In this document: piece after piece, positions 3,358 to 43,600 of the stretch | Layout: each line of letters starts with the position of its first letter | How positions within the stretch are numbered: position 1 is the first letter of the stretch | Source of the DNA: Girardia tigrina | Lineage: Eukaryota | Assembly: GCA_001938485.1 (NCBI GenBank) | Contig: MQRK01243953.1 | Location: 1-49,345, forward strand | Direction of reading: 5' to 3' | DNA: 49,345 bases | Translations under genes and position numbers: made by a program | Notes under the pieces: model-generated | Told to the model about the DNA's origin: nothing | The model's input: only the letters and a program-made list of their open reading frames with translations | Database searches by the model: none

Positions 3358-3446
3358 TTCTTCGTTCTTATCAACCCACTATATGCTATGTAACTTCAAC
3401 ATTCAGAAGGCAAGACATTTTATGTTTGTCGACATATGGACTAATT

Positions 3447-12091: not shown

Positions 12092-12117
12092 GAAATAAAG
12101 AAAATTTCAGAAAGGGT

Positions 12118-14510: not shown

Positions 14511-14589
14511 TCAAATAAATGGTTACTTGAACGTAGTTTGGACCGCGTTTAATTTACTTATTTTTTATTAAATAAAAAATTCTTAAGCC

Positions 14590-14643
14590 AATCAAAGTTT
14601 ATTAATTTCGACGGTTTAACCGTCATCGTCAGAACAAATGATT
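14590..14643 (-). ncRNA. Minimal hammerhead ribozyme, mirror copy in the inverted pseudo-LTR
   Basis: Reverse complement of 17254-17307. Confidence 0.7.
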
Positions 14644-17253: not shown

Positions 17254-17307
17254 AATCATTTGTTCTGACGATGACGGTTAAACCGTCGAAATTAATAAAC
17301 TTTGATT
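17254..17307 (+). ncRNA. Minimal type I hammerhead ribozyme in the Penelope pseudo-LTR
   Basis: AATCAtttGTT-CTGACGA-T-GACGGT(taa)ACCGTC-GAAA-TTAA-TA-AACttTGATT. Confidence 0.72.
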
Positions 17308-18141
17308 TGCTAAAGAATTTTTTATTTGATAATTTGCCAATTTATTTCAATTTATTCACAATTATTTTTTATTGATTTAACTTTCGAATTTTTCTTCTTC
17401 AAGGATAAAATATTTTGATTTTTGTTGCAAATTCTCATGGACAACATAGAATTAATTTTCTTGTTTCCTTGCAACGTTTCATAAAGAAAATTTTATCACA
17501 TAATTTATTTGCATATTTTTTAATATTTTGTTATAATATGGGAGAAAAATGATCATGAGTACTGTGTAAAAATACTGTAAACGTTTTGAGCACAATGTGA
17601 AAAATGATTAAAATTATGCAAACGATGCATTTCAAGCACTCTTATAAGTAAAGACAGTTAAGGAATTTATCAAGTCTTTTGAGTAAAGTTCATACATCAA
17701 AGAATATCTGTTTCTTCATTACAATAAAAGTTCAATTTTTTCTCAAATACCTTTTAGTTCCTTTGTCTGTTTTCGAATGCATTTGATACAAAGAAACTTA
17801 AAATTATGTCAAAATTCTTCTCTGAATAAATTTTATTCAAAGCACTCATAAAAATCAGTTATAAACGTTTTAATTATTTACTTGAAAGTAATTGAAACTT
17901 TTCCGAAAACCTGTAACTTACTAAGTGGTAAAATTAAATTTATACTAAATGCCTTTATAAAAGTATATGTGCATTATTCGACTCTTATGCATAAATTTTT
18001 TATTAAATATTATTATTAACTAATCTTGGCCTCAAACAGTGTTATATTGATCTTTTTTATTTATAAAATATATATTTTCAGTCGATCTCTATGATGTCTT
18101 ACCCCATCAAATCACCTTTCCTTCTGGTCATAAAAAGAATT

Positions 18142-19910
18142 GGTCTGTATTTTTACTTTCAGTAAAAAAATAAAACTCAGTATTATTTTAATTGATTTCT
18201 CAGTATTTTATTAATTTTAAGAAAGTGTCTTAAATGAATTTTGATCCATAAGGCAAAACATTTTTCAGTAAAAAAATCATTTATGTAGTATTAAAATATA
18301 ATAGTCTAAGTAACAAATTATATATTTATCAGTATTTATTAACAATATTATAAGTAATTATAAGTAGTATTTATTAAAAATATTAAGTATTCATTACTAA
18401 TTTAATTGTACAAATGTAAAAAGATAATTTTAGGTAATTATTAACATATCAAATAAAAAAACTGAAATTGAAAAAAAATATTCAATGAGTAAAGTTATTG
18501 TCGCTTTTTTAGGACGACCATGCTTTCTTTTCTCTCCAATCGGTATGTGTTTTGCTTCAGCTGGTGGTTTTATGAGTTTTAAACGAATTGCTAGGCAAAG
18601 AAGATGTTTGTATATAAAATATTTGAGAAAGTAAGGCCAAGTGCATGAGCCGGTTCGCCAATGCTCAATGTCGTGATGCAGAATAACAATCCAGGTAGCA
18701 AAAGCTCGCCTCCTGAACTGGTCGAAAGTTGCCCAGAGGATTCTAAATTTTTTAAATTGTATTGAATAATTTGAAAGATAAATGTAAAAGCCTCCTGTTT
18801 CTCGTTCGAAGATATGCAAATGTAACACGGATAAAATTGCCTGTCCATATCACTAACACCAACAACCACAACTGGCATTCCTTCGAAGTTCAGCTTGTAC
18901 GTGGCATCGGCGTGCAACTTGTCAGATTTTGTAGCATTCTTCATCAAACGTTTCGTTTAAATTACAACTTGAAATGAACGACCACAGTCGTCATCATCAT
19001 CATCGTAGTAATCATCTTCATCAATGCTTATTTGAAATCCGATAACAACAGATTTGTCTTCATCATCGTCATCCACACTTGAATATTCTTGACACCAACA
19101 TTCCAGTTCACCGAGGCTGATCTTAGACGGTCCATATTTTTCAGAAAGCAATTTATTTAAATAGTACTGGACCTGGGATTTATTTTTGATCGTCATGTAT
19201 TGTTCTCTAAGCTTTTCAAGTATTTTTTTCGCCTTCGCGTTCAACTCAAACAGACGTTTTATTTCTTCTTTGACTTCAACAGTATGGTCTCTTGCTTGTT
19301 GACCAGCTTATGAGTGGTCTTCCTGTATTCGAAACAAATATATATGCTCGTTAGTACTCTTGAATAGTAGATAAATGCTAAAATTGCACTATGCATCGTG
19401 GTATTTCATTCGTTTGCAGCGATAGTAAAATTTGTCACCATCAACAGTTTTGTTCGTGCAATGGTACGCCCAATGATTTTCTCCGTTTATAAGATTCAAT
19501 AGCTTGTTGTTTCGTTTCAAATTCACCGTCGCAGATCCAGTTACAATTTCTCTTATACCTTTTAGTTTTTTTCAGCAGTTTTCGCTTGCTCGAGTTCTAA
19601 TTCACTTTCGCTTGGATGTTAAGGAATATTATTTTGAAGCCATTACAAAAGATTTATTGATTTTTTTTTAATTTAATAATTTTTATTAACTGAGTTATTT
19701 TTTTTATTTGTTGTTCTAATTATTTATTTATCAGTACTATTTTTTAATACGGAGCGGTTAATTTAAATATTCAGCATTTTAAATAAATACTGAAATCTTA
19801 ATACTGATAAATTGATTTTTTTCTAAGTGTTCTATTTAAAACACTGAGAAATCAATTTTAAAAAATACTAAGAGTTTTATTTTTTTTTCTGAGCCAAAAA
19901 AATAGTCGTC
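18142..19910 (-). mobile_element. MULE (Mutator-like) transposon, decayed
   Basis: Perfect 9-bp TSD AAAAGAATT (18133-18141, 19911-19919), imperfect G...C TIRs, and transposase motifs LHADATYKLNFEGMPVVVVGVSD, SWIM-like SCTWPYFLKYFIYKH and AT-hook-like GRPKK. Confidence 0.92.
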
Positions 19911-22958: not shown

Positions 22959-23228
22959 GAAAATTTATGTCATTGTTGGATGAACACATATTTTATTGTT
23001 AATAAACCGGCAATTCAGTCACTACCTGATGGATCAGAAATTTCCTCAAACCGAAAAATTGGTAGATTTAATTCCGAAAGTCATGATAGTGCTAAGTTAA
23101 CTTCACGACTTCACGTGGATGTTGAATCACCAGTCGAACTGCAGACCTATAAATTATCTCTTAGCAAACATGAAATTGATAAGGCCAACAAAGACGCAAA
23201 TTGTAGAACGTTTCCCTACAATTTTACC
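22959..23228 (+). CDS. PTEN: PTEN exon D (C2 domain)
   Basis: ttttAG acceptor and GTaaat donor. ENLCHCWMNTYFI...LSLSKHEIDKANKDANCRTFPYNFT matches DKMFHFWVNTFFI...[25 protein letters not shown]. Confidence 0.93.
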
Positions 23229-23269
23229 GTAAATTAGTATTTTGTGTTATTTATTTTATTTGTGAATAG

Positions 23270-24050: not shown

Positions 24051-25940
24051 CATAATTTTAGTTTTTTTATTTATATCTTTGTAAGCTGTGGTATTTTTGT
24101 ACTACAATGTATTATTTATTTAACTTGATCATTTTCTTAGTTACGTTTTATTAATTCATATGTGATTTCTGTTATTTAAAGATTTTTATATGAAAATTTC
24201 CTGTCAATTGAATCAGAAGTATGACAAAAAAAGAAGACAAAGATTAAAGTTAATGAAATCAGAAAAGAAGACAAATTATTTTTTATATTATTAGTTATAG
24301 AAAGAAAAAAGAAAGAAAAGAAAATGAATCAAATTATTTTTTTATTATCGTCGCAAATGGTAATAATAATTACCATGTTAATAATTTTGAATTTAAAACT
24401 AAATCGATAATAAATAAGTCGATTTAGTCATAAATAATATTATGACTATAAATTGACGTTCAGTATACAAGCTGAAGAAATTTACTGACATTGACTGAAT
24501 TCATTTATTGCTGAAACAGTTCTTATCATTTTTACGAAATTACTTTCATCACCGAAACATTCACGATTTCGATTCGCTACCGATTGTATATTTGACGACT
24601 AACCTTTAATAATTACGAGTGGTAATTATTTATATTGTGTTTCAGTGTTATACTGTTATTAAAAAGTTTTGTTAACAATTTTGATTATTTTTTGGAGTTA
24701 TTTCTTTTTTTTGTAAGGTTACCTAATAGCTTTAATATTCGGTCAGTTTAGTATGTTAGTTCTTTTTATATATCATAACTAATTTATCTGATAAAACCTA
24801 CAATTTCTTTTTTGTTTCGTTCAGAGGATAAATTGCGAGTTTTACAATATTCATTATATTAAAACATGTCTGTTTTTATTTTCTTTATAATTTACGTATT
24901 TCTTTTTATTTTTAATCTGAGTAATTTCTTTCTATTCGTTTTTTTCAACATATGTTCTTCTAACTAAACTTTTTGGCCGTTTTATACGTCGTAAATTCGT
25001 AATGTTAAATAATTAATATTGTCGAATGTAAAAGTAATTTAAAGATTATGATTTTTTAATAAAATTTATTTTTAAATTATCATGTAAAAAATTTTAGTTT
25101 TATTTTTTTACTAAAAACCTGTTTTTCTTTCTCTTCTCATCAAGTACTACCCCAGAATACTACATGATAATTATACATCATATACAAAGATGTTAAAGTC
25201 TCTCTACTGACCCTGCTTGTGTTATACAAATTCTCTTATTCAGAGTATATTAACCATTACAACAACATTACTAATTTCTCTTTTACTGCAATATGGAGTC
25301 ATCTTTGGTTCATCTATGTAAACATTTTAGACTCATCATTCTTCAACAACGATGTACCACTTGAAAATAAGCAAGACATGCTTGAACCACCTATTAGATC
25401 AAGTAAAAGGTAGATATAAAAATTAATCGGAAAGAAATGGTTGATATGCAAAAGTGACAACGGGGAGCTAGATAATATCGAGAGAGATTCAAAGGACTGC
25501 TCGGCATGCTGACAATTGACTTCAGTTTTGCTATATCAGTAGTATGATATTAACAAATAACCTTCAGTCGTCAATGATACTACTAGGTTTGCAGTAAAAC
25601 TAGCAAAGACATTATTGAGATACATAACACTGATTTGCAGGTTATCAAGGAACAGTGCTGATTGTAAGGAGCATTAGCACATGATTAATGAATTACTGAA
25701 CTATTTATGAGTTCATTGAACAATATTATGTAAAAGTGACAATTTTGTTTTCACGCAATGCTATTTACTCTTCAAGAAGCCATATGTTGCGTACAAATGG
25801 TCATGTGAATTTATAATTTATTCACAGTTACACCTGTTTTTTGTTTTTTTTTGATTCCATTTTAAATAATGTATCAGATTTAATAGTACAGTTACAGAAT
25901 CTTAATATCAGCTGAAGAAACTACTTTCGACAATGGACTT

Positions 25941-27131
25941 TGGAGCGGAAAATTGGTTGACCGAACATTTGCCAGTTAAAGGAAAATATATAAATAAAAT
26001 AGATAATAAATTAAAATAAAATAACTAAATAAATCCTTTTAATTAAATAAATAAAGTAATTATATAAAAAACTAATTTAAATTAAATCAAGAAATTAAAT
26101 AACTTTAAAAAATTAAATAATTAATAAATAACAAAATAAATTAATGTTAAAGGCTCAATTAAATGAAGAAGAATCTTTATCTATCGAATTGCCGTTGTCT
26201 TTTTTTTATCTGATGTAATGCAAATTTTGTGGAATCATTCGAATTAAACAAATATTGATCATTTTGGAATGTAAAATGTAATTAAATTGTGAGCCTCTTT
26301 TTCTGCCAATGTTAAATTATGTATGTGTGTGGAATTATGCAATCACAATATAATCAAGTATGTATTTTATTTGTGTGATAGTTGCATGAATGTCTGAATG
26401 CAGTGTGTATTGTGTGTAAGGAATGTATGATATGTAAATAATTGATTGGATGAATGTGTATTTTTTTGTGTGTGTTAATTTGTAATTGTGAATTGTTATC
26501 ACAATTTAAATCAATTCTTTAAAAAGACAGTTAAAAACAATTTTTCAGTTTTTTTTAAAAAAAGAGCATTTGTCAATAAAATTTTGAAAAATAATTTTTG
26601 TCTTCATTTTCAATTCCACCGGCTTCAATGCAGAGCGATGAAAAGATTGTTAAAAGTTTGAATAATTATCGAAATCAAGTGAAAACATTGTTTAGAAAAA
26701 TGACTAATTTGTCTCACTCAGTTTGTTCCATTGAAAGTGATCAATATATGTTTTATTATTTGATGAATAGAGAAATCTGTCGTATCATCTTAACTAAAAA
26801 AGAATTTTCTAAAAAGGTGGCATTTGCATTTTTGATTGATATATTATAGGTGAATTTCATAATAAATATGGCAGTAAATTTGAAATTGCGTCGAGACCGT
26901 ATGCATTTATTGAGGTCAATAAAGATATTCAAAATTTACTAAAGAAATATATAGACACCTGAACACCAATTACTTTTAATCAAATTAATTCTAATTTGAA
27001 TTGTGTTCAAAGAATTATAATGAGAAACATTAACGGTATAATTCAACGAGGAGAATCTCTGAGTGCTTTAAATGATAAATTGACAAACAATTCTGCTCTT
27101 TGCAAAACATGGAGACACGGCTTCCTGTCCA
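25941..27131 (+). mobile_element. TG...CA cargo element, copy 1 (1191 bp), carrying SEC22
   Basis: Begins TGGAGCGG, ends CTGTCCA, perfect TSD GACTT (25936-25940, 27132-27136). Leader is similar to 38388-38975. Confidence 0.88.
26622..27110 (+). pseudogene. SEC22: Intron-free, 5'- and 3'-truncated SEC22 (longin R-SNARE) copy
   Basis: ASMQSDE...KTLFRKM...KKVAFAFL, frameshift near 26845, then SRPYAFIE...YIDT*...VQRIIMRNINGIIQRGESLSAL. TGA at 26960-26962; transmembrane anchor absent. Confidence 0.9.
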
Positions 27132-27639
27132 GACTTACTTATTATTAATTTATTTATATATTTACGAATCTAATTGTTTTTATTATTATTGAAACAATCA
27201 CCAAAAATAATGTATAAACACAGATAATATTGACCGATTACAAAGAACAATTAGAACGATAAAACCTTTAGATTAATATAGGTTTATCAATAATTTTTGT
27301 GAATTTTTTGATAAGATTATTGGTCAAGTTGGGTATTTCACATGGGAATCGCGTTCTCTTTTGATACATACAACAAGTCGATAATGTCTGCAAAATATAC
27401 AATAAATTAAATTGATGAATAATAATAATGATACAAACAATACTTATTATTCAACTGGGTTTTTAATGTTGTTCAACTGAATTAAGAAAGAAATTTATTT
27501 TAAATATTAAGATTTAAATTTTTAAGTAAAGTTAGTAAATTTGACTTTCAAAAGACTGATCTTTTTATTAGAAAGTTTATGAGATATCCAGTTTAAAAAT
27601 CATATTGCTCTGAAAACAGTAGTTAAATTTTGGTTGATA

Positions 27640-28936
27640 CGTGATGCGATTCATAAGTCCTTAGACTCGACAAGAAAGCAAAGTCAAATCAACTTTATTT
27701 TTTCAGAATCAGTACATGACATCAAAGTAAATCATTTCTCAATGTATGAGCCGTGTACATCAACACACTTGCGTCAGCGAGCAACAAGCTCAGATAACGC
27801 ATTTTTGTAAAAATTAGGAGGCAAAGAATTAAGAATATCAAGGACTTTCTCCTTGAGGAAATCAACTGAATGAAAGTAGACACCTTTCAAATGTTTCTTT
27901 AGGTGTTTAAACAACGCAAAATCACTTGGGGCTAAGTCAGGGCTATAGGGTGGGGTGGGAACCAACTGAAAGCCACAGTCATCCGCAGCAGTCAAAGTTG
28001 CTCGCAAAGTGTAAATGGGTGCACTGTCTTGAAGGAGCCACAATGGGATCCCTCTTGGCTTCCTATGAGACTTTCTCACATCGCGAAGTAATTCAACATA
28101 ATACTTACTATTCATTGTCAGTCTTTTCTCAAAGAAATCAATTTTAATAATGCCATGGGAATCCCAGAACACAGTCAGCATTGCTGCTCTCTTCTGCGAT
28201 GTGCCGCTTCGAAGTTTTCGGGGAGCACTTTCACAAGGGAAGTACCACTCAGAAGATTGACGCTTGCTCTCAGGCACATACAAGCTCACTGGGGTTTATC
28301 TTGTGTAAAGATGTTGTTGATGAAGCGATCACCATGAGTGCGAAGCAACTCCAAATTGGCAGTGCAACACTGCAAACGTTTGTCGCACATTTCACCGGAT
28401 AGGAATCGAGGAACAAAATGTGAACACAATTTGCGAACTCCAAATGATTGCAGAATATCATATGTAGAATGGTAGCTAATGTATAGACGCTGTGCAAGTT
28501 CACGGATACTTATTCGTCTCTCTTCAGACACGATCTTCATGCACAAATCAATTTTCCCGGGTAAAATTTCACATGGTCGTCCTGATCTCTCAGCATCAAA
28601 ACGGATTGTCGGCCATGTTTTAAGTCTCTGATCCAATTATACACTGTTGCACGTGATGGGCACTGGTCACCGTAAGCTTCCTGCAACTACTGCAAAATAT
28701 CGCAGCTTTTAGTATTGCGCAGGAGCAGAAATTTTATCACGCTGCGATATTCGACGCTACTGCCCATGTCTACAGTAAAAAGTGAAATAATGACTGTACG
28801 CACCACTCAAACACACAGGTTTGGTATGGTGAGTCATATCTGTAACCAATGATAGCTCATCTATTTTTAGTATCAACGGCAAATACGTCATAATCTTATT
28901 TATCAACGAGTCTAAGGACTTAAGGATCGCACCACG
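27640..28936 (-). mobile_element. Full-length mariner (DD34D) element, transposase inactivated
   Basis: 30-bp TIRs (27/30 identical), TA flanks, 1297 bp. Transposase 28767-27732 has FVPRFL, MLTVFWD, LQDSAP and YSPDLAPSD motifs with stops and frameshifts. Confidence 0.95.
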
Positions 28937-29779
28937 TATAAGATACAGTAAGATGTACTTCAGATTGACTTTGATAAGATGGCGTATTTCGCGGTTAGTT
29001 ATACACAATTATATTTGAAATGAAGAAGGAGGAAAAAGGCAAACAGAAAGCGAAAACCTGATTTTAAGTTACTGAAGGATTTTTATGGTTAATTATGGAT
29101 TATTAAACTAATTTCGAAAATTATTTTTTATTTATTATTGTCTCATTATTTGTAGGTAAGAGATTATTTAGAAATATTTACTTTATGTATGTTTCATGAT
29201 AACTATTGAAAGCAAATGTTTAATAAAAGAAGTTTTAATTTATATATTTAATGTTGTTGTAAAATGACATTTAACCAAGAATCACATGACAGTAAGTTTA
29301 TTTGAAATTAATGGAGTATAAAAAGTGAAGTTAACCAACCTAAAGAATACATTTGAAATGTTAATTAAAATTTTATTACTCTCGGGCAAGAGTTCTTCTA
29401 TTGTTTGCTTCAAAATCAAAAAATTGAAAGTATTGAAGTCATCCCAGATATCCACGAATTACAATGACAAAAATTAACATTGAAGTGCATGAAAAAGCCT
29501 CTAAATCATCCAGATTACATCTTAATTTTTGAAGACTTGAGTACAGATAGTGACTAGAGAGAAATTGCTTCTCAATTATCATCTCTTGTGGTCAGCAGAT
29601 GGATGAGCAAGCGAAAAACTGACTCGTTTTCTTCAATTTCTGATAACATTGTATCGATGAAACTTTCAAATGAGTAAAAATTGTTAATAGAGGAAAATTT
29701 TAAACTTTTAAAAAAGTACTTTTTATAATTATGGATACCACAGAATAATACAAAAGATGATTTTTTTTATGAAATGCTA

Positions 29780-30765
29780 ATTTGAATTTACAGGTTTTCC
29801 CACGTTATTGTGAAATTTTTGCTAACTAAACAATAAGCTAATGGGAACTCACCCTCTTAAATTGCAGGAATTTTAGGAAGTAAAACGCTAGCTGTTTATG
29901 CAGTTATAAACAAATATAAGAATGGCGAGAATATCAAGAGAAAAGCGAGAGGTGCATTACGGAGAAAAGCACTTTCTGACAAACAACAAATTATTTTGCT
30001 TCAATGGGTTCACAAGGATTGTACTTTAACGCTCAAAGCGTTAAAAGAAAAATATCTTGAAGTGTTTAATGCTGTTGTTGTAAAATCAACAGTTGATCGA
30101 TATCTTAAAAATTTCGCATACAGTTTCAAACGAATTTATGCGATCCCGGAGCTTAGAAATGATGTTGATGTAAGTAATGAACGGGTGGTCTTCTCCGAGA
30201 AGTGTATGAATATATTGGCGGCAACTGATGATTCAAAAATTTTTTTAGTGTTTCTATGAGATCAAAATATGGAAGATCTACCGTGGAAACAAAGCCGGTT
30301 TACACAGTCCAATCTCTGAGAGCCAGTAATTTTTCTGTTTGTTCAACAATGAGCAAAATAGCGTTTTTGATTTAAAGGTTTCCACATCGCCATATAATTT
30401 GCAAAAATTTTTTAGAGTTTTAGAATCGTTATTAGGAATGCTTGAGACAAGGGGCATTTTTTCTGCGGTACTGATAATGGATATTATTCATTCCACATGT
30501 AACGACCAATGAAAGAACCTACACAAAATAAAAGTCATAGATTGATCTTCCTGCCCTATATTCACCATTCCTAAATCCTATCGAAAATCTGTTTGCAAAA
30601 TGGAAACAGTTATTCAGATCAGGAAGTCCACGAAGTGAGGATGAGCTTCTTGTCTTGATTGAAAGTACAGCCAGGAATATAACACGTTAAGGCTGCAACA
30701 ATTTTTATCTACATATGTTCAGTTATATAATAAGATCGGAACGTAGCGAAATAATATTGGATTAA
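29780..30765 (+). mobile_element. Tc1/IS630-like (DD34E) transposase pseudogene
   Basis: TLTLKALKEK...STVDRYLKNFAYSFKR and YSPFLNPIENLFAKWK motifs with several disruptions; TIRs not resolved. Confidence 0.85.
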
Positions 30766-32935
30766 TCATTATTATTTTTTGGATGTCTTAATATATTTAA
30801 ATACATTAAAAAGTTTTAATTTTAATAGTGTTTTTTTTAATTATAAAAAAAATACAACAGAATGTGTAATGCCTCTTAGTTAATTTTTTAAAACCTTTTT
30901 TGCAAAATTGATTTGGAAATTTTCAAAATAACGTGGTAAGAAATCTTTCATTTTCTACTTAAAATTTCCATTCTTGAAATAAATGTGATAAGCTGATCGA
31001 ACAACTGATTATATTATAAAAATGAACAAAAGTATTGAAAATCTTTCGAAGAAAATGCCGTCTGATCGCTCAAATTTTAATATTTAATCGTTTAGTATTT
31101 GAAGTTAAATTAAAAAATGTTAAATTATTAACTTGATTCAAAGATTTCAAAATTAAGAAGTGAAGACAACTTTTTCGAATAATTATGATTAAAAATTATA
31201 AATATAATTTTGTCAACAAGAATACAGAAAGGTTAACAATCTTCCGAGAGCATTCATCAAGACAACTCTCATTGCTGTAATAATAAATGTTGTAAAAATA
31301 ATTTTGTAAGTGTTCTTACCAATAATATTAACGAAATTTTTATTTTTCCACAAATTACGCAGCAAAACTCTACATTGACTTAATAAATAAACATAAAAAC
31401 CACAGAATTATGAGAATTGTTAGCCTTAATTTGTACGAGTGTTTTTATAAACATCTTTGGAATGTGATTATCTCTAAATAATAGATTGATTATAAACTAA
31501 TAAAATTAAATTTTCAATCATCACAGGTTCTCATTTTCGAATGATAATAAAATAGAACCCATGTACAGATTTCTAAGAGCCTCATTTTCTAATCACGATC
31601 TTTAAACTTGCTTTAAAAATTTTTCAAATTTCATCGACTCTTAAATCTTAGCACATTTCCTCTTTAGAATTTCGGACAATTATCGCTGCACTATTGCAGA
31701 AATTAAAGCCGACTTCCTTCTGAAGGTGGGATAATTTTGTAGTTACTAAATGTTAGCCCTTTATTTTTAAATTTTTATTCCGGTAAGACTTTCTGTTGTA
31801 TTTGCGACATTATTTTAATGGTTTATTTAACCCTTTCTGATCGGATGTATTATATTTTGATAAATGTAGTAAAATTCTAATAAACATACACATATTAAAT
31901 TTCATCAAAATAAAAGTTATAATATGTTACTAATTATCATTTTACTAATATTATAATAGATTATTGTAAAAAGTCGTTGAATATAATCTGTTATGGATCT
32001 GTAACAAAGGAGTATAGAGATTAAAATTACTTAATTCATGAAACCAACTTAAAAGTGAATTGATCTGCTTAATTTATCAAAAATTCCGTTTGGAATTTCA
32101 AGCGAAAATAAGATTATGTTTTTAAAAACTGATTTATTTAAGCTATGATATAGTTGTCGTTTTATCCCAGGATCTTCCACCAATAGATACTTAATTCTTA
32201 AATCAAAGAATATTTGTAGCTCATTTTCTCATACGAAAGAAGTATATATGTATGTATATTTTTTCACCTTAATTTCTACAAAGACGCTTTCAATACCCCA
32301 TAAACTGTCTATTTTTAGATCTCGTTATCTAATAATAATATATAATGACTCAAATTCGATGAAGGTTGTTCGGGGCCAAATGTCTACTTTTTGCAGCTTC
32401 ACTCACAGAAACTTACATATAATGATGGATTTTAGTTACTAATATAGGTCTAAGGTCACTCAATGCCACCCAAAAACAAATGCTTGAAATATGAATTAAA
32501 GCTTGAGCGATCGAAAGTTTCATGATAAAGTTGCTTTTGAGTTTCAAAGTCAGGATATTGCATAAAGATCATTTAATATTTATGGTAGATGTCTCAAAAT
32601 CAATTTTTTTCAGGTTGTTGAATAATCAAAAAAATATTTTCTAAAAACATTTTCACGGTGAAATATTGATCCCTTGCCAAACACTGAACTTTTAATGATA
32701 TTTAGATTGAGAAAATAAAATATATTACAGTAATTACTAATTATTATAATTAAAATCATGATATAATATGTATGTTCTTTTCTAATGACTACATATATGA
32801 AATTTTAAATATTTACTACCAATTATTACATATTATGTAATAATTAGTTATAAATGTTGGAAAATCACTATTAATTAAAAAATAATTATAACTACTTGTA
32901 CAACCATACTTAACGTCATAAAATATTTTATGATT

Positions 32936-33261
32936 TGACTGAGTCAAATATGAAAAGGGACTTGTTTCGAGCATTTAATCTTAAAACGTTTAAGCCAATC
33001 GACGTAAGACTCTTAGAAACTCTTAAAAACATTTTAGTGACTCAACTTTTAAAATATTAAGGGTGACTCGACTCGAGTTAAAAAAATAATGACTCGTGAA
33101 ATGTAAAATATGATAACTGACTTGACTGGACCAGTAAAAATATGTAGTGACTCGACTCGACTTGCAACTCGTAAAAAATTTTAGCGACTCACTTGAGACT
33201 CGACTCGCAAAATATTTAGGGTGACTCGAGTCGAGAAAATAGTGACTCGACGAAAACACTG
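32936..33261 (-). repeat. MITE-like end with repeated GTGACTCGACTCGA motifs
   Basis: Many GACTCGA/TGACTC units ending at AAAACACTG (CAGTGTTTT on the minus strand, hAT-like terminus). Confidence 0.55.
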
Positions 33262-34181
33262 GTTCACAGTATAAAATGTTATTCGCAGTAAAAAACATAA
33301 TCTATGAAAGAGGAAATACTTTACTTACTGTCGTGAGTATTGATCAATATTTTTTCTTTACTTAAGATAACCTCTTTAATGAACATTTAGAGGTTATCTA
33401 AAAATCTGCATAGATTTATTATAAACCTATTTTATGTTTCATTTGTAAAAGCAAGAGAGTAAAAAGACAAATGATTTCCAAATTAGGATCATGATATGTA
33501 ATGAGTTATGAATAAGAAACTTCTTGAACCATTGATTTACAAAGATTATAATTAGTATAATCTCCTACTTGGAAAATATTGTAAGGAATATTGACTTGAA
33601 ATTAATTGTTGTCATTTTTTGCTATTCGGAGATTTCAAATTCAAAACTAATTAGAAATTCAATTAAATCTTTATTTATTTTCAAAATTTATTTATTATGA
33701 CATTGAAAGTGATTTATTTAAACACAAAATAAATTTTTCCTTTTTCAACATTCAATCTTTTACTATACACAATAAAATGTCTTTTTTACAACCAAATTAA
33801 TTAATTTTTTCAAATGTTTTTTTTGAATAATTCCTATTTCTAATCAATTCGGTTCATTGATTTGACTCGAACAAGGGAAATTCTAGATTTTATTACAAGA
33901 TTTATTGTAGAGAAAAGAAGTAAAAATATAAAAAATAGAATATATCGTCTATAAAAAACGAAAGAAACTACAAAAAAGTTATAAATTGTATGATGGGACT
34001 TTATTTCAATACAAACATGAATTTGTAACTAAACTAAAGTTAATCTTTGTAGCTAATCCCATTATGAAAGGGGTAAAAAATAGTGTACCCGTTTTCTTGT
34101 AGATTTCTATTAGACTAATTCGTATTGTAATGTTACAAATTTGTAGTTTGAAATTTCTTTTGTACGTGACTTATTTTTCAG

Positions 34182-34355
34182 TTAAAAAAATTGCACAAAC
34201 TGACTCCAGACTATGGGATAGGTGACAATGGGGATAAACATTCCAATTCTCCGAACAACAGTGATAATCCCGACGACCACTCCGTGAGCAGTGAATCGTC
34301 AACGAAAAACTCAGTTAGTGATTTGGACGATTTCCTCGAGTCGGGAGAGTCATAA
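34182..34355 (+). CDS. PTEN: Probable PTEN terminal exon (Ser/Asp-rich tail, stop TAA)
   Basis: tttttcAG acceptor, phase 0 compatible with exon E. LKKLHKLTPDYG...SVSSESSTKNSVSDLDDFLESGES* forms a coding-like island followed by AT-rich sequence; linkage to PTEN is inferred. Confidence 0.6.
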   Translation, partial: LKKLHKLTPDYGIGDNGDKHSNSPNNSDNPDDHSVSSESSTKNSVSDLDDFLESGES

Positions 34356-34949
34356 GATTATTAAAGAAGAGAATGTTGATATTGTTAAAGAAACCAAATA
34401 TTAGTAATATTCACTAAGATAATAATAATAATGGATAATGATAATAATCTTTGTTTTTTATACTGATTTTGTTTAGAAATGTGCTATTTAAATGTATAGA
34501 AAGTTTTTTGATCGTTGAGATGTATTGGATTTATTTTTATACATGTATAATGGAATAATTTCTGCCCTGGTGTATTTTTAATTATTAATTAATCATTTTT
34601 AATTTAAATACAATTCCTACTTAAGTCGTTCGTTTTTAGTGAATTTTAATTGTAATTATTATACAAACAATAATTTATTTTTTAGTTAGATGAAGGATAG
34701 CTTTAAGTCATATCTTTTTTAGAACATTTCCGTAACCTACTTGAAATATATTTGTAATTCCGAAGAGGATCGAAAACCGTAGGTTAGAAAACGCTGATAA
34801 TTTTTAAATTCCAAACAAACTTGATAAGCATAAGATGTTTTGTCCAGTAATCGAATCATTGTGCAGCGTCTTGAAACTTTTGTGTCACTTGAAAAATAAT
34901 TTGAATTACGAACACAATATCAAGAATAGTTTCCGGAAATTTCGGAACA

Positions 34950-35300
34950 CAGGCTTTAAGTTCTTCTGATTTGATCTCATGCCATGCTCTCAGTAGAGAT
35001 GACTTAAGGGAATTGATATTAGCATGTACAATAGCACTGGCCTTCTAATCCAAAATGGACCAAATGCTGAAGCCCAAATCTTTGGATCTGGACTATATGG
35101 TAATGATAGATTTTTTATCCAGAAGTCAATTTTCAGATATCGCACACTGTTGTGAATTTTGATCTGTGTACTGGGGGCCACATCTGATTGCAAAGTCCAT
35201 GGTCAACGGTTGAGGTTTGAATTGGCCCATTTCAATATGAAAACTTTGATGATGTCATAAACATGCACTACGCCTTTGAATTTGATTTCATTTTCAGTAA
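34950..35300 (-). mobile_element. Tc1/mariner (maT/DD37D-like) transposase fragment
   Basis: WTLQSDVAP...DFWIK...PYSPD, then after a frameshift FSIWSILD...HANINSLKSSLLRAW. Confidence 0.65.
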
Positions 35301-36369
35301 AGATCAAAAGAATATTATAAGAATATAAAGAGAAGTATTGCATAATCCAGACACAAAGACGGATTAGGAAAGCGATACAGAAGAGTTACCAGTATGAAGA
35401 AAGTTAAAGATTGTATAGAAAGTGGATATAGTTGTTAAGATTTTGGTGAGCTCCTAAATTTTTGAATTTTAAAAACGTAACACTTAAAATGTTTTAAAGA
35501 TATTTCATTGAAAATTTTATATATATTTTTGATATATGTCATCAAACTAAATTTTCAAAAATTGTTGTCAAAAAACATTTTAAAATAAATCTACTAAATA
35601 AATTTTAAATTTATCTACTAAAGTTTTACCTATAAAAATTTAGGATTAACATAAATTAAGTTTCAAACTATATTGTACTTTAATTTTATTTGAATATAAA
35701 ATTTAGGAATTATAAATTAAAATCATGTAATTTAATTGAATATTGAATATTAGATATTATTTAATGATGCAACAGAATCAAATATCACAATTTAATATTT
35801 AAAATTAGGAATAACGTTACAAAACTAAAATCGTATATATAAAATTTATTATTTAATTATGAGTAACAATTTTTAATAGTAAACAATTTTTATGAGTGTG
35901 ATGGTTCGAAGCTCGACTGAAGCGCCGAACTTGGACTCCAAGCACCAGGAAACCGTTCGGCAAAAATCAGCCTGGTGTCAAACACTCGAAATCGTATCGC
36001 GGTCGACAAATCCGTTGTTTCGGCGAATACCAATTGATCGAAAACGACGCCGGACCGACAACGACGCGCCACCAAAAACGAACTGAAAACCACTGCGAAT
36101 GCAACGGCCGCAAAGGAAACGAAAAATACGATCTTCTGACAATTAAATTCAATCATGGTCAATAGCATCAAAAAAACGAAATTTCGCCAAAATTTTTTAT
36201 TGAGTTGATTAAAACAAAATTCCAACAAAAACAATTAACATTTCTTTCTACATAAATTAATTAATTTTTACTTATAAAATCATTTTTTTCTTTTATTCAT
36301 TAAAAAATAAAACTGTTTTCTTTACAAATAATTAACTTTTTACAAAAACTCTGTACAATATTTTTACGA

Positions 36370-38030
36370 TAGGCATAATTGTTGTGGTACACAATAATGA
36401 GTAAAATATTTAAGACCAGACATGATTTGTAGTATTCCATTAATTAGAGAATTTGGGAGAGAGCTACAGTGGAAAGAACATAACCCAGAGGAAACAAGTG
36501 AAACTAACATATGCGAAATCAAAGCAAAATTTTGGAGAGAAATTACAGACGAAGGTTGAGTTAAAGAAGTATTGAAAACAATAAAACACACAAATCGAAA
36601 AATCTTTATAGAAAATAATTAACTAATATCGAAGTATATTTATGACAAAACGACTAGGATATCAGGTGCACAAACTTGTTATGACATAGAATAGAAACGA
36701 TAGGAAACCCATAAATATAAAACGTAGAAGGCAGACGATACACTTAGAGAACGAAATAGAAGAAGCAATTAAAAATCTAGATGCAACTCACATTCTAATG
36801 CATCAATACCATGCATTTGGAAAAAAGACAAGGACGAAATCAGACTGGATTTCAGGCATTTAAATCTAATTACACAGAAACAGGCACTCACCATACCAAA
36901 CATCACAGAGATGATAGATAAGTTACATGGAGCAAAAAATTTCAGCACAATAGACTTAGGGAACGTGTACTACCAAGCAGAATTTGGTAAGTAATTACAG
37001 GAAGAAACGGCGTTCTCCACTGAATCGGCACAATTCTTTTTTAAACTTCTGCCTTTCGGCAAAGCTGCAGCTCCGGCAATATTCCAGGAACTAATGACTA
37101 TAGTATTTAATCCGATCAAGAAGGGAGCATCAGTTTATTTATATGACATATTAATAGCAACAAGTACAAAGGAAGAACATTTTAACGTAATTAGTATTTG
37201 GAAGAATAAAGCAAACAGGACTAAGAAAAGACTATCAAAATGTAAGATGTTTCGACAAGAAGTAAAACTCTTAGTACATAATTTAAATGACAAAGAGATA
37301 CAGTCGTATTTAGAGAAATCGCAGCTCTAGAAAAATTTCAAAGGCCCATATGTATTAAGAATTTAAGAAGCTTCTTGCAAATTTTTAATTACTACAAGAG
37401 ACTTATAAGCAAATACGCGAGGAAAGTTAAACTATTGGAAGGAATGTGTGACTCGAATAACAAGAAACTGATTTGGACAGATGCATATAAAATAGCGTTC
37501 CAGGAATCCTGGACCAGGATATGAAAAAAAGCGTTGATAACAACACCAATTCTAAGCTTTCCAGATTTCAAGAAACAGTTAATTCTAGATAAGGACACCA
37601 GCTTTGACAACATAGGGGCAGTACCATCACAAATAGGTGAATCATGTAAGAAGCAGGTCATAGCATTCGGATCACACGCAATGTAAGCTCGCGAAAGAGA
37701 TTATAACATAACAAGAAAGGAACTATTAGCTATTTTTTTTACTTTTTTCAGCACTTCAGCCACTATTGATACGCTTAAAAATTCAAATGTGGAACAGACC
37801 GCAAAGCAATATTATGTATATTCCACACAAAAAAAGGACTAACAGCTCAATTTCAGACATGGATGAACTATCAGAGTAGTCTGGATATCGAAATAGAATG
37901 TAGGAAAGGAGAACTACACAACAACACAAGACAAAATTGCGACATATGCACCAAGTGTCAAATAGAATATGAAGAAGCTAAGAAGAGTAAGAATAAGATT
38001 AGATTGTTAGCAGTAACTAACTAACGATAT
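36370..38030 (+). mobile_element. Degenerate Ty3/Gypsy pol (RT and RNase H)
   Basis: DFRHLN...FSTIDLGNVYYQ...TAFST...LPFG...PAIFQELM...VYLYDILI and ILDKDTS...IGAV...IAFGSH...TRKELLAI; many stops. Confidence 0.9.
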
Positions 38031-39017
38031 AACTACTAACAAGCCACAGCAGGTCTGAAAGAATGGATACCCAAAGAAAAACGGAAGGTCATGACCCTGG
38101 TCATGATCAGTATCTTTGCAGGTGTATATGCGAAAATTCCATACGTTTCCTGATACACTCGAGCATAAAACAAAACATAATTAAAAATATAATATTTATT
38201 TAAATATAATATATATAAATACAATATTTACTTCAAGACTCCGGTTATACTTTCGTTTCTCTACTATCTGTATTTAAATCCTATCTGTGTATTATCAATA
38301 CCCGCAATTACTGCATTACACTGGACCAATGTATGTCTAGAATTTTTACCGATAAATCGAACCATTCTAACTTAAATTTTTACTATGTGGAGCGGAGAAT
38401 TGCTGATTTGACCGAACATTTTTGCCAGTTTCAGAAATTAAAATAATTAAATAAATCATATTTTAATTAATCAATTAAATAAAAGAAAATAAAGTAATTA
38501 AAATGATTAACTGAAATAAATAAATTAAATTAAATAAAAAAAATAATAAATAAATAAATAAAATAAATAATTCAAATAACTCGAATGAGTGAAAATAATT
38601 TTACCGAGCAAGAAGAGGCAACATGATATAAGTTAAAAACACATTATCAATCGATAATGTGAATATAATAATTAATCAGATGGTGAGCCTCATTTTTTTA
38701 TTTCTAATTTCAGTGTAATAAGTAGATTGTGTAATTGTTGAATCTCTGACAACGGGTATGTATTTAGTGTGTGATGAATATGAATGTGCATTTTTTGAAT
38801 ATGATTGGTTTGTGCGTGTGTGTTAAAGTGTGTGTGTAAAAGTGTTTGAATATCTGTCACAATTAACAATTTTCAATTGCAATCACAATTTCAAGTTTTT
38901 AAAAAAAAATAAAAGTTTCATTGTCAAGTTTAATTTTCAATCAAAAAAATATAACTTTTTTTTAAAAAAATAATTTGTTTAATCGAACGAACGCGAGGAA
39001 GTAGATTGATAAACGAA

Positions 39018-40656
39018 ATGGCCGATAGAGAAACGAAAGTTTATAGAGCTAAATTAGCTTAACAGGCTGAAAGATATGATGAAATGGTTGATGTGATGAG
39101 AGATGTCACTAAAATGACCGGCGAATTGAACATGGAAGAGCGTAACTTATTATCCGTAGTGTAAAAATAGTTGATCCTGGGAAAACGATGGATCAACTAC
39201 TTTTACTTACGATAAAAGAAAAAATGAACTGAATCAACTAAGTCTAATGATTAAAAAAAACTTTAATCCAAAAAAAATAAAAATAACCTTCATAACTTAA
39301 TCCAAAATTCATTAAAATCACAAAAAACATCAAACATCATTCTACTATCATGAACGGTAAATAATTATTATTGTCGTTATGGAATCAATTTATTTATGGA
39401 TTTCTTTTTTTATTCAGCAATAATTTCTGTGATGCAATATATTATTCGATGTAATGAATCACAGAATAAATTAAATAATAAATTGTAAAAAATTCGACTT
39501 TGTGATTATCTTTATTTGAGTTTTTTTCGAATCAATTATTTTGGTTGAAACCAGTGTTTCTTTCTCTATCAAATAAATTTACGAGATTGATGTGACAGTT
39601 TTCGACAGCTTTGTCGTTGATTTAATTAGTTACGCTGAAAGATTCCCCGTCGTAAGGAAAACCGCTTTCGAATAGGATTTTTTCAAAAAAAAGATTCAAC
39701 GATAAAAGAGCAAATCAGTGTGTAAAGGCAAAGATGTTAAGAGCAATCATTAATTATAGGACAATGCGGAGATGACGATTCGTCGAATGTAATGATGCAG
39801 ATCGAGGCAACAGAGATCAATCATTCGTCACTTCTGCCTGCATCGATTTGTTAATCGGACGGAGTCTCGTGCCACCCGAGCAACACTGGCTAGTCTTACT
39901 CAAACTCAAGTTGTCCTTCCACTGTGTCCGCTTCGTAAATAACAGGAATGAAGTAATCAATTCTCACATAGGTCCTTCACATAATTCTTTCACGCATAAT
40001 TCTTTAAGTAGTCTAATAAATAGTGATAGATCATATCGAATGAAATTTTGTTTAATCTCTTCCTCACTAATCTCCTTCTGATTTATTTTCCTTAATTGTG
40101 GCAAAGAATTGAGATTCGAGATCATTGGCTTCGTGAACCACTAATCTTTCAAAAATAACATAAAAAAAAAGAAAACACAATATACATCCCACTCCTCACA
40201 CACTGGAATCCCTATGTACAAAGAACAACTAATCACTCCAAGACTTTGTACAAAAGCAAAAGAAAGAATATCACATCCACACGCAAACCACGCGGAAGTA
40301 GAGTATCACAACAGTCCCCAACTGATACACAAAAAAAACAAAATCACATACACAAACAAAAATGTACATTAATATAGGACACTGTGGTGTGTGAAGTAGT
40401 GGGTGCACTACGCGTAGCATACAAAAACGTAATCGGAAGTCGGAGAGCATCGTGGAGGATAATGAGTAGCATCGAACAAAAAGATCCTTCTCGACTTCCA
40501 TTGATTAAAGCCTACCGAAGTCAAATTGAAAGAGAATTGAAAGAAGTCTACGCTGATATAATAGCCTTACTCGATGAGTTCTTGTTGGTAGCTTCAAATG
40601 GTGGGGAAGCTAAAGTGTTCTTCTTGAAAATGAAAGGCGATTACTACCGTTTTCTG
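39018..40656 (+). pseudogene. 14-3-3: Intron-free, 3'-truncated 14-3-3 (epsilon-like) copy split by a solo LTR
   Basis: [23 protein letters not shown]...EERNLLSV (39018-39159), continuing [15 protein letters not shown]...[15 protein letters not shown] (40418-40656). TAA at 39060-39062. Confidence 0.95.
39160..40412. mobile_element. Solo-LTR-like insertion (1253 bp)
   Basis: Perfect TSD CGTAG (39155-39159, 40413-40417); termini TGTA...TACG (one change from TACA); removal restores the 14-3-3 frame. Confidence 0.85.
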
Positions 40657-43600
40657 TCCACTATGCATAACCTAACCTTTTTTACATTTTCCCCATCTTT
40701 GTATTTACGAATTCTCATATCGTTATATTCATAATCGTGTATTTGTAGTACGGTAGTAACCTCGTCACTCGACTGTCGCAGAATCTGAACATTAATACAC
40801 TATCTCGGCGAAATTTTACATATCCTTGAATAATATACGTGTGAAAGGCAGGCTCACTCTTAAAATTTTTGAAACAATTAATTTTCATAAAGAATTTCTA
40901 AAATAAGGAAATATTTAAAATCAAAAGTTTTTAAGCAATTATAATTAAAAAATATATCTTAACCCTTAGAGGATCCCTGGGGTCAGCGTATGATATCCAG
41001 GGATATTTTAAATTAAATATTTTTTATTATGAATATTATGTGATTTAAAACAATCATATAAATACAAATATAATATTTTACTTTATAAATAAGAAATAAT
41101 ATATTTTAAATTATCCTGATTATTAAAATCCCTATTGACGACATTACCCAAGATAAATTCAATAAGAGAAAAATTTTGCATATTGCGTTGGTGGGATTAA
41201 AAAATTTGAGTTAATTTATTCATTTTGACCGGTTCAGCGCACTCGACCGCAGTGCAATCGATGCAATACGACTGAATCGTATTACCGCAAATTAATTCGA
41301 TTTTATCGATCCAACTAACCGATTTCTTGCACAAAGTGCACAATAAGTCACTACAATGACGCAAATTCGCACCTTCAGACCGGAATTCACCAACATTCGA
41401 CGGATTTTATGGGCCCCTGGACCAAGTCCAAAAAATGTAAAAAAAATAAAAATAAAACTCGTATTTCTGATTTTCCCCTATCTGACTCCGTAGTATGTGA
41501 TTTTTTATTTAAAAAATAAACACGTCATGTCATGACATAATCACTAGTTATTATTAGCAAGAGAAAATATTAATTAAATAGATAAATCACATTAATATTA
41601 CAAAAATTTATTTAAAAATATTTATCGATAATCGATCAGTCGGAAATAAAAAATGTCAGACAAGCGTGTTTATCTAAGTGGAGCGCTGAAACGTAAGCGA
41701 AAAGTTGAACAGAAAGAAAAAGAATTACTTAACAGTCAGAACATGAATTTGTTGAAATTAGGATTTACTGTAACAACGAACACTGTTAAATATCAGTCGG
41801 AATCGGAAATGAGCGTCATAGAAACTGACATGCTTTGTTCAGATTCACAAAAAATTAAACGTAGCTTCCGAAGAAGCTGAAATGTTATTTAACTCTGAAG
41901 GAATTCATGAAAAAGACAATAGTGGTGAAATTCATTTAATTTATCCTCAAGTTAGTCAATTGACTGAAGCGACTGAGGTTGAAAATCAAAACACATATTT
42001 AAATATTGAAGAATCTTCACAGGATGTTTACAAAGGTTTAATTTAGTAATGACTGTGCATTGTGGATAGTCATTTCTGATAATATTCGTGAATTTTGGCT
42101 TAGAAAAGGTTCAAATAATTGGCAACATTATGATGATGATTACGAAGCTTCGGAAAGAATTTATCACGATGGTAGAAAGCAAAAATTTTCACGATGTCAT
42201 TTATACAGAAAACATGTATCTGATGAAAACATTTTACATTCGTGGCTGCTTTATTCACCGTCAAATGGCAGTATATTTTGCTTTGCTTGTCGACTATTCA
42301 AGTCAAATTCAAATTAGCATTTGCGACTGGAATCATTCGACAGCATGCATTTCTCAGCATGAAAATAGTCATTGTCATAGAAATGCCATGTTAACTTTGG
42401 CTACAAGACAACAATATGCTGGTACAATAGACTGTCAAATGGAATTAGAATTTACAAAATAAGGGGATTATTGGCGTAATATTCTGAAAAGAATTGTTGC
42501 AGTCATAAAGTTTTTAGCAGAACGAGGACTGGCATTTCGGGGAAATGATGAGTTGATAAATTCTTCCCAAAATGGTAATTAATATTAGAGTTCTTCAACT
42601 ATTAAGTCAGTTTGATCCATTATTAAGTAACCATAAAGATAAATACGGCAACCAGGGAAAAGTATTTGTCATCCACAATATGAGAAGAATTTATCCATCT
42701 TATGGGTGATAAATTGCTAAAAATTATTGCAAAAGAAATTAAGGAGCAAAAATATTTTTCTGTTCCTGTTGATTCTACTCCAGATCTTAGTCACGTCGAT
42801 CAACTGACTGTTATCATACGATACGTTGAAAAATCATCCCATCAAGCTAAGGAGAGGTTTTTGAAGTTTTTGCCTTTGGAAAAATATACTGGAGAAACAC
42901 TAAAAAATACCTTGTTATGTTTTTTAAACGAAATTAGTGTATATATATCAAATTGTCGTGGACAGTCATTCGACAATGCAGCAAATATGTCGGGGAGATA
43001 CAATGGTATGCAAGCTAAAATTAGGGAATCAATCCATTAGCACACTTTATACCATGTACTGCTCATTCCCTAAATTTAATTCGAACTTCAGCTGTTGAAT
43101 GTTGTGTCGACACTGTTAATTTTTTTTGGCTTTGCGCAGAAATTATCAAATTTCTTTAGTGCATCTACATCTAGATGGGCAGTATGAAACGTTGTTTGGG
43201 ATCCAAAAATTTACTTTTAAAATCACTCTCCCAAACTAGATGATCAGCTAGAGCAGATGCAATTAAAGCTCTGTCAGATGGATACAACAATATAATAGAT
43301 GCTTTAACATGTCTTCCTGGTGATGATCAAAAACTATAAACAGGGCGTGAAGCAAATGATCTTTTGCGACATTTGTCATTTTTTGAAACGGTGCTTCTAA
43401 TTGAAATGTAGAACAATATTCTTCAGAACATAAATAAAACCAACTTATATCTTCAAAAATCAAACTTGGAACTTGGTACAGCAGTGCAATTATTAAAAAC
43501 ATTGCATGAGTATATTTGTTTGCAAAGAGAAAAATTTGAAAAATTTGAAACACAAGCCAAAATTAAAGCTCCAGAAACTAGATACAGAAACGAAGATAAG

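Follow-up and report, generated by a model that had tools for sequence, protein, structure and literature searches.

Two insertions in the window (the whole stretch of DNA that was analysed, 49,345 nucleotides) begin and end with the same bases, and each holds a fragment of a different host gene. The question raised by this locus is what kind of mobile unit they represent and how the host sequences entered them. A preliminary description had proposed a new and numerous family of mobile cassettes that captures host mRNA at a fixed slot.

Ends and target-site duplications

The two units and their flanking duplications are located as follows.

25941-27131, + strand: copy A, whole unit, 1191 bp, TGGAGCGGA...CTGTCCA
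25936-25940, no strand: left target-site duplication of copy A, GACTT, direct read
27132-27136, no strand: right target-site duplication of copy A, GACTT, direct read
38388-40660, + strand: copy B, whole unit, 2273 bp in total with 1015 bp of its own sequence, TGGAGCGGA...CTGTCCA
38383-38387, no strand: left target-site duplication of copy B, CTATG, direct read
40661-40665, no strand: right target-site duplication of copy B, CTATG, direct read

Direct reading of the sequence confirmed the shared ends and the perfect GACTT and CTATG duplications described earlier, as well as the sizes of 1191 and 1015 bp, the latter being what is left of the 2273 bp of copy B once a nested insertion of 1253 bp and one of its two 5-bp duplicates are subtracted. 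In both copies the TG..CA ends form a 4-nt terminal inverted repeat (TGGA/TCCA). Given the base composition, a perfect 5-bp target-site duplication would arise by chance with a probability of ~0.0025 for each element, and the 3' 7-mer CTGTCCA common to both with a probability of ~2e-5, while the exact 9-mer TGGAGCGGA and the 14-mer TTGACCGAACATTT were found in the window in these two copies only. The TG..CA ends and the 5-bp duplications support the conclusion that both units are independent integrase-type insertions. Neither a terminal direct repeat (second LTR) nor a long inverted repeat was found when each copy was searched for repeats, and both units lack an RT or integrase gene.

A shared leader and a nearly fixed cargo position

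Each unit consists of a non-coding leader, a host-derived cargo and a very short 3' end.

25941-26603, + strand: leader A, non-coding
26604-27115, + strand: cargo A, SEC22-type fragment (Longin and part of the SNARE domain)
27116-27131, + strand: 3' end of copy A past detectable cargo homology, at most 16 nt, last bases CTGTCCA
38388-39003, + strand: leader B, non-coding, with its 3' limit somewhere within 38971-39003
39004-40660, + strand: cargo B, 14-3-3 fragment
40654-40660, + strand: terminal CTGTCCA of copy B, overlapping 14-3-3 codons, where L002, a cDNA-like relative, has TTGTCCG

The leaders, 600-660 bp long, were found to be colinear, homologous and diverged, as had been claimed: their semi-global score against each other was 175, whereas random segments of the window gave 7.7 +/- 8.5 and block-shuffled controls 10.5 +/- 8.4 (z about 20). 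Their identity was 75-78% over the first 50-65 nt and 62% over 301 nt of the middle part. Leader A opens with 45 conserved terminal nt, followed by a degenerate (AAAT)n tract (25984-26145), a GT-rich middle and a T8A7 motif (26549-26563), and the blocks of leader B follow the same order, with (AAAT)n at 38435-38579 and T8A7 at 38956-38970. No Pfam transposase or RT domain was detected in the leaders, in agreement with the earlier statement that neither enzyme is encoded.

T8A7 occurs in the window in the two leaders only (2 found, 0.04 expected). Since it precedes the first recognisable cargo base by 40 nt in A and 33 nt in B, the two copies hold their cargo at almost identical positions relative to the leader, and by this landmark the capture slot proposed before could be upheld as nearly fixed. 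No more than the final 7-16 nt of the element come after the cargo.

The SEC22 and 14-3-3 fragments

Pfam matches and contiguous homology verified that the two units hold different host cargos, SEC22 and 14-3-3. Both are contiguous host coding sequences in sense orientation to the leader, without introns and truncated at the 3' end, and no poly(A) or A-tail was found on the cargo of either copy.

Cargo A spans approximately residues 11-183 of a 217-residue relative, so that both ends of the coding sequence are absent, with contiguous homology over ~170 codons, one frameshift and one premature stop. It was matched by the Pfam families Longin (E 2.7e-12) and Synaptobrevin (E 5.9e-07). A word-index search for the SEC22 parent within the allowed length range gave no match; the highest identity reached in an exhaustive search was 47%.

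Cargo B comprises a short 5' UTR, the start codon and approximately residues 1-137 of a 251-residue relative, the C-terminal half being missing (Pfam 14-3-3, E 8.5e-28). It has decayed by one premature stop and one nested insertion, and has one in-frame 12-nt gap relative to three relatives. Its identity is 93-95% to the relatives L001 and L025 and 80-84% to L002. An exon junction suggested by L001 and L025 gives the 14-3-3 parent gene one candidate intron; this junction was not accepted as a proven intron, and it is the one candidate on which the intron-based case for capture from RNA can draw.

At the 3' end, cargo B tracks the cDNA-like L002 via ...GATTAYTAYCG as far as the terminal 7-mer, which reads TTGTCCG in L002 and CTGTCCA here, and its homology reaches the penultimate base of the copy. 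Because the final bases sit within the 14-3-3 coding homology, the 5 nt TGTCC common to the terminal 7-mer and L002 form a microhomology at this junction, the mark of a reverse-transcriptase template switch. Such switch-point microhomology could be demonstrated for one junction of the four. The earlier statement that the cargo runs to within ~20 nt of the 3' end thus holds for copy A, where at most 16 nt are left, and fails for copy B, in which the overlap of CTGTCCA with 14-3-3 codons also contradicts the idea of a separate shared terminus after the cargo.

Cargo B is interrupted by a later insertion of another element.

39160-40412, + strand: nested insertion inside cargo B, 1253 bp, starting with TG and ending with CG

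This insertion is flanked by its own 5-bp duplication CGTAG (39155-39159 and 40413-40417) and has a 17-nt hairpin near its 5' end; a Pfam search gave no protein-domain match in it, and thus no transposase or RT domain. A 13-nt match between contig L001 and its left edge was no better than chance.

Further copies and sequence context

No third copy was found in the 49-kb window by exact and mismatch searches with both conserved leader motifs or by blastn with leader segments, and no further copies were found in three public collections (metagenome, genome and viral contigs), none of which contains the source genome. Ten ORFs of the window had no counterpart in the protein collection either. The searches did not bear out the populous family that had been predicted. 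The terminal stretch of each leader is of low complexity and alone matches many AT-rich sites. The leader patterns gave 22 matches in metagenome contigs, all of them GC-rich bacterial chance matches, three in genome contigs, likewise bacterial and due to chance, and none in viral contigs. Six other CTGTCCA sites in the window were rejected as copies, having no leader or cargo context. Within the 49 kb there is also no cargo-free copy and no LTR pair enclosing a primer-binding site, a polypurine tract and gag-pol.

Next to copy B, outside the units, a remnant of another element was recognised.

36995-37683, + strand: degenerate Ty3/gypsy-type pol remnant with RVT_1 and RT_RNaseH_2 matches

The matches lie in different frames, with at least one frameshift and several stops, and no protease, integrase or gag was detected in this remnant. 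It shows that such LTR retrotransposons live in this genome. A link between the remnant and copy B was rejected: the remnant has no sequence similarity to the leader, no integrase follows copy B, and copy B has its own duplication. Together with the nested insertion, which also starts with TG and has a 5-bp duplication, the presence of this neighbour was counted in favour of an LTR-retrotransposon origin of the units, and its missing similarity to the leader was counted against it. Mariner, MULE and hAT remnants are also present in the window. When ~100 open stretches were compared with Pfam for other host-gene fragments, the matches were limited to transposon domains, a C2H2 finger and a single PTEN_C2-like exon. 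No RNA families or tRNAs were detected in the window, nor in either copy at a permissive threshold.

Comparison with known capture systems

LTR-retrotransposon-mediated retroposition is known from Drosophila, mosquito, zebrafish, chicken and mouse, with yeast Ty1 cases cited in the same work (PMC5131818). The published retrocopies are partial, 3'-truncated and poly(A)-less, border on LTR-retrotransposon sequence at points of short similarity (median 6 bp), and the resulting chimeras can act as non-autonomous elements (PMC5131818). Copies A and B resemble them in being partial intron-free mRNA copies with 3' truncation, no poly(A) and integrase-type insertion, and in the short similarity at the switch point, here at the 3' junction of copy B. 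However, in the published cases the element interior is partly replaced and LTR-retrotransposon sequence with both LTRs lies on both sides (PMC5131818), whereas here the cargo lies within a single LTR-like unit with 7-16 nt after it, and two independent captures occurred at nearly the same element-side position. Because the process has already been described, the new kind of element first proposed is reduced to a variant architecture.

Maize Bs1 and the exon-capturing TRIMs of plants (PMC4717578; PMC2774510) share with copies A and B exon-only host fragments, 5-bp target duplications, the lack of own coding capacity and an overall size of 1.2-1.5 kb, but hold their cargo between two LTRs, whereas copies A and B are without terminal direct repeats. 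In Cassandra TRIMs host-derived sequence, there 5S rDNA-related, does lie inside the LTR; it is a single ancient, conserved and functional capture (a polymerase III promoter) found family-wide (10.1101/2023.07.14.548913; PMC7215508), unlike the different and decayed protein-coding fragments of copies A and B. Pack-MULE and Pack-TIR elements (PMC8277862) are also non-autonomous and carry host gene fragments, but their long inverted repeats, 8-10 bp duplications and genomic, intron-bearing cargo are not seen in A or B.

With ordinary solo LTRs the copies have in common the single unit, the TG..CA ends, a 5-bp duplication (within the 4-6 bp range) and a non-coding promoter-type 5' part, but such LTRs are normally without a terminal 400-500 nt of host coding sequence that varies by copy. 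The inverted repeats of Ginger-type integrase transposons measure tens to hundreds of bp and their duplications 4 bp, compared with the 4-nt inverted repeat and 5-bp duplications found here. Neither the hallmarks of LINE processed pseudogenes (3' poly(A), variable duplications of ~7-20 bp, a bias to 5' truncation) nor those of Helitrons (5' TC, 3' CTRR after a hairpin, no target duplication) are displayed by A and B.

Origin of the units

The reading that we prefer, and regard as reasonably likely, is that each unit is a chimeric DNA copy made in an LTR-retrotransposon particle and then inserted by integrase. The units are probably solo LTRs with host cDNA between U3 and a very short R-U5. The leader would correspond to U3, and the final 7-16 nt to all that remains, or all that ever existed, of R-U5; we infer these labels because a cargo-free LTR, a full-length element, a primer-binding site and a polypurine tract of the family are absent from the data. 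In the proposed mechanism, minus-strand DNA synthesis would start at the primer site and copy just those few terminal bases, after which the nascent strand would pair with a similar short motif in a co-packaged host mRNA and not with the element's own 3' end. Synthesis would proceed up the host mRNA for 400-500 nt and then return to the element RNA at the U3 end. Completed synthesis would yield an element with both LTRs reading U3-cargo-short U5, and recombination between two such LTRs would give solo units as observed.

Divergence between the leaders (62-78% identity) is far greater than that of cargo B from the relatives closest to it (93-95%). Because of this difference, and because the same few 3' bases and the same leader end were retained in the two captures, the stray first strand transfer looks like a habit of the lineage and not like two accidents. 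Simple random switching does not predict the same leader position twice, a coincidence explained here by assumption only, and the chimeric-retrocopy reading draws on two copies only.

A stand-alone non-autonomous cassette, in which the leader, the slot and a few terminal bases are mobile without an LTR pair, are copied and inserted in trans by the RT and integrase of another element, and repeatedly pick up mRNA at the slot, would agree with the nearly fixed slot and identical 3' end, with two diverged leaders that each hold cargo, with the failure to find a second LTR or interior and with the lack of any cargo-free copy in 49 kb. We consider it rather unlikely. We know of no replication route that rebuilds a promoter-bearing 5' leader from a downstream-starting transcript without a second copy of the kind that LTRs supply; moreover, a solo LTR would look identical, and two copies cannot discriminate. 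A non-autonomous cut-and-paste DNA transposon (Ginger-like or of another DDE family) that acquired cDNA is highly improbable: DDE integrase-like transposases also yield TG..CA ends and short duplications, and mariner, MULE and hAT remnants occur in the window, but the terminal inverted repeat is just 4 nt, the 5-bp duplication matches none of these remnants, and the intron-free, 3'-truncated cargo and the junction microhomology point towards reverse transcription.

Reverse-transcriptase template switching also features in the small-RNA/LINE chimeras of mammals and fungi, and LINE-type (target-primed) chimeric retrocopies of this sort would share with A and B a two-part structure of a constant 5' and a variable 3' part. 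Their probability is nevertheless smaller still, since poly(A) and a LINE 3' tail are absent, both duplications are exactly 5 bp with TG..CA ends, and the cargo is truncated at its 3' and not its 5' end. As for coincidence or an assembly artefact, the region is rich in A+T and in repeats, and masked stretches occur elsewhere, but two perfect duplications, shared 9-, 14-, 15- and 7-mers that are unique or far above expectation, the colinear leader (z about 20) and the absence of N runs inside or adjoining either copy make it practically negligible.

Significance

For chimeric retrocopies of LTR-retrotransposon origin, what would be new is the cargo inside an LTR-like unit at a defined point, a known process with an unusual layout. 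A more specific suggestion, put forward tentatively and on balance doubtful, is that an LTR-retrotransposon lineage with an R-U5 of ~7-16 nt, whose first strand transfer often lands on host mRNAs with a similar motif, provides a position-specific route of exon capture. If so, a new LTR with the structure U3-host cDNA-short U5 would arise at every such event, and in the following cycle the captured fragment could provide a longer terminal redundancy. Many sub-lineages would be expected in the genome, marked by different host gene fragments right behind the element promoter, and exon capture would be systematic and position-specific and not a sporadic accident.

For annotation, the SEC22-like and 14-3-3-like stretches are to be treated as decayed element cargo and not as host genes. 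If the pattern is genome-wide, it would form a natural record of stray reverse transcription and would extend LTR-mediated retroposition, hitherto with interior cargo, to capture at a defined point inside the LTR. It would also represent a route that repeatedly puts host coding fragments directly behind a mobile promoter, and thereby material on which exon shuffling could draw and from which chimeric transcripts and small-RNA targets directed at the parent genes could arise.

Ends, duplications and leader of the two copies

Both insertions, copy A (25941-27131, 1191 bp) and copy B (38388-40660, 2273 bp, or 1015 bp without a nested insertion), start with TGGAGCGGA and end with CTGTCCA, and each is flanked by its own perfect 5-bp direct repeat (GACTT for copy A, CTATG for copy B). 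The termini and duplications claimed in the preliminary description could thus be read directly in both copies. Exact matches to the 9-mer TGGAGCGGA and the 14-mer TTGACCGAACATTT occur in the window only at these two copies. The leaders, the non-coding 5' parts of the copies, had been described as colinear but diverged, which was borne out: their semi-global alignment scored 175, compared with 7.7 ± 8.5 in 300 segments drawn at random from the window and 10.5 ± 8.4 in block-shuffled sequence (z of about 20), and their identity was 75-78% over the initial 50-65 nt and 62% across 301 nt of the middle. The block order is the same in both: a conserved 45-nt terminus, degenerate (AAAT)n, GTGAGCCTC, a GT-rich stretch, ATCACAATTT and a 15-mer landmark, T8A7 (26549-26563 in copy A, 38956-38970 in copy B). 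A repeat search of each copy detected neither terminal direct repeats nor an inverted repeat longer than TGGA/TCCA. As claimed earlier, no transposase or reverse transcriptase (RT) domain was found by the Pfam scan. The four masked N runs of the window, none close to the copies, were kept unaltered during the analysis.

Host gene fragments carried by the copies

Each copy was said to hold a different host gene fragment, sense to the leader, and the Pfam matches agree. The cargo of copy A is a SEC22-type fragment matching Longin and Synaptobrevin, with outer bounds 26604-27115 (about residues 11-183 of a 217-residue relative); the first ~10 codons and the membrane anchor are missing, and one frameshift and one premature stop are present. 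The cargo of copy B is a 14-3-3 fragment, which comprises a short 5' UTR, the start codon and the coding sequence up to about residue 137 of 251; it is interrupted by one premature stop and one nested insertion and, compared with three relatives, has one in-frame gap of 12 nt. Both cargos are contiguous and have no poly(A). Their broken pieces, namely the two frames of cargo A and the two parts of cargo B around the nested insertion, were searched separately.

The nested insertion (39160-40412, 1253 bp) starts with TG, ends with CG, is flanked by a 5-bp duplication (CGTAG) and contains a 17-nt hairpin at 39161-39206; it matched no protein domain, occurs only once in the window and probably represents a solo LTR from a different family. 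Its TG start and 5-bp duplication indicate that integrase-type insertion went on after copy B had arrived.

Junctions between element and cargo

In copy A, CTGTCCA stands after the SEC22 cargo, with at most 16 nt remaining 3' of detectable homology. The terminal CTGTCCA of copy B (40654), however, overlaps 14-3-3 codons: the protein alignment extends to base 40659, and the cDNA-like environmental contig L002 reads TTGTCCG there. The proposed shared 3' end after the cargo therefore holds for copy A, but in copy B it falls within the coding sequence. Since the same 7-mer follows a different cargo in copy A, the element end and the 14-3-3 mRNA have TGTCC in common. It has been reported that RT template switching in LTR-mediated retroposition leaves microhomology at the switch, with a median of 6 bp (PMC5131818); the 5-nt microhomology at the 3' junction of copy B is this published signature. 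CTGTCCA occurs eight times in the window (443, 8695, 18841, 24030, 27125, 37474, 40654 and 42959) against 2.0 expected, a count reached in 0 of 100 shuffles, and the six sites outside the copies have no leader or cargo context in the window.

T8A7 occurs twice in the window, once per leader (0.04 expected), and lies 40 nt (copy A) and 33 nt (copy B) upstream of the first recognisable cargo base. The element-side 5' junction thus nearly coincides in two independent captures. Because the sequence 3' of T8A7 is of low complexity and aligns ambiguously, the fixed capture slot put forward earlier stands as a near-equal position good to a few tens of nt, but not to a single base. TATA-like motifs ~30 nt upstream of each junction are compatible with a cargo beginning at the transcription start; they were given no weight, as DNA with so high an AT content contains many of them.

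Relatives of the cargos and the intron question

The closest 14-3-3 sequences to cargo B are environmental: P0001 (contig L001) and P0310 (contig L025), with 93-95% DNA identity, and the full-length, cDNA-like P0121 (L002), with 80-84%; a further relative, P0122, lies on a genomic-looking contig. The top named matches, from arthropods, molluscs and Rhizopus, were only 66-68% identical. No close SEC22 parent of cargo A was found in the sequence collections searched.

L001 and L025 exit the 14-3-3 frame at one shared point, a GT, 12-13 nt before the end of cargo B, whereas cargo B and L002 stay in frame across it. This break is suggestive, but not proof, of an intron absent from cargo B. The grade reflects three observations that call for caution: L001 and L025 are 99% identical across 478 nt yet unlike on both sides, P0122 reads across the break point, and the sequence past the break is rich in GC, whereas the introns seen in the window are short and AT-rich. 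Such introns in host genes here are indicated by a PTEN_C2-like exon (22959-23234, forward strand), which has splice-like flanking sequence and is separated by ~44 nt from the following open stretch; the window showed no other recognisable exons around it. The shared segment (204-681 of L001, 390-867 of L025) covers about 14-3-3 codons 17-124 plus ~150 nt of GC-rich sequence, and could be a gene duplicated with its intron or one more chimeric copy of this 14-3-3 piece. In L025, 42 nt of coding sequence are also missing, and an additional ORF of ~80 codons lies upstream.

Genomic surroundings

The eukaryotic DNA of the window is AT-rich (22-35% G+C per 2 kb) and forms a transposon graveyard, densely filled with a mixture of decayed DNA transposons.

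Mobile elements and remnants in the window
12111-13588, long-inverted-repeat element 1, nearly perfect 192-nt arms, 97%
14565-17332, long-inverted-repeat element 2, 2-kb core (weak GIY-YIG match, 16645-17034) enclosed by nearly perfect arms of 215, 178, 43 and 40 nt
18594-18956, reverse strand, MULE transposase remnant
27777-28636, reverse strand, mariner-type transposase remnant
29861-30256, forward strand, Tc3-type HTH remnant
36995-37683, forward strand, degenerate Ty3/gypsy-type pol
42684-43037, forward strand, hAT-type DUF4371 domain remnant

The pol remnant, directly 5' of copy B, has RVT_1 and RT_RNaseH_2 matches in separate frames and several stops; no integrase, protease, gag or LTRs belonging to it were recognised in the window. 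Its union with copy B as a single element was rejected, since it does not resemble the leader and copy B is flanked by a separate duplication. At 9114-9334, 21-nt repeats form a short array that adjoins an inverted copy of itself (arms of 63-69 nt with 80-86% complementarity). An open stretch of 157 codons (2908-3378, reverse strand), in which a C2H2 zinc finger matched below the Pfam cut-off, is a possible exon of a host gene or transposon.

Proposed mechanism and known systems

Integrase-type ends with duplications, a homologous non-coding leader and a processed-looking, 3'-truncated cargo were observed directly, as were microhomology at one of the junctions and an almost constant position of the element-side junctions. 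Under an LTR origin, the likeliest reading, the leader would be U3 and the terminal 7-16 nt R-U5. Minus-strand synthesis would have copied just those R-U5 bases, paired with a motif of similar sequence in a host mRNA that had been packaged, proceeded up this template and switched back to the element RNA at the U3 end. The completed element would carry two cargo-bearing LTRs, whose later recombination would leave the solo units observed.

A stand-alone cassette family without LTRs is, with two copies to judge by, the less likely reading and has no known route to regenerate its leader. Other origins fail several of the tested features: a DNA transposon is highly improbable, LINE-type retrocopies are slightly more so, and an artefact is the least credible of all.

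The process behind the copies is already known, and the layout is what differs. LTR-mediated retroposition (PMC5131818), Bs1 and gene-carrying TRIMs (PMC4717578, PMC2774510) and Cassandra, with host sequence within its LTRs (10.1101/2023.07.14.548913), have been described. In contrast to these, copies A and B each carry the cargo inside one LTR-like unit, at almost the same position and followed by few element bases, and the cargo changes between diverged copies. No description of this layout was found in the literature searched, with Repbase and Dfam outside the scope, which is not proof of absence. The few 3' bases and the leader end that were retained are the same in both events, and divergence between the two leaders far exceeds that between cargo B and its relatives. 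These sequence comparisons argue for a habit of the lineage rather than two accidents.
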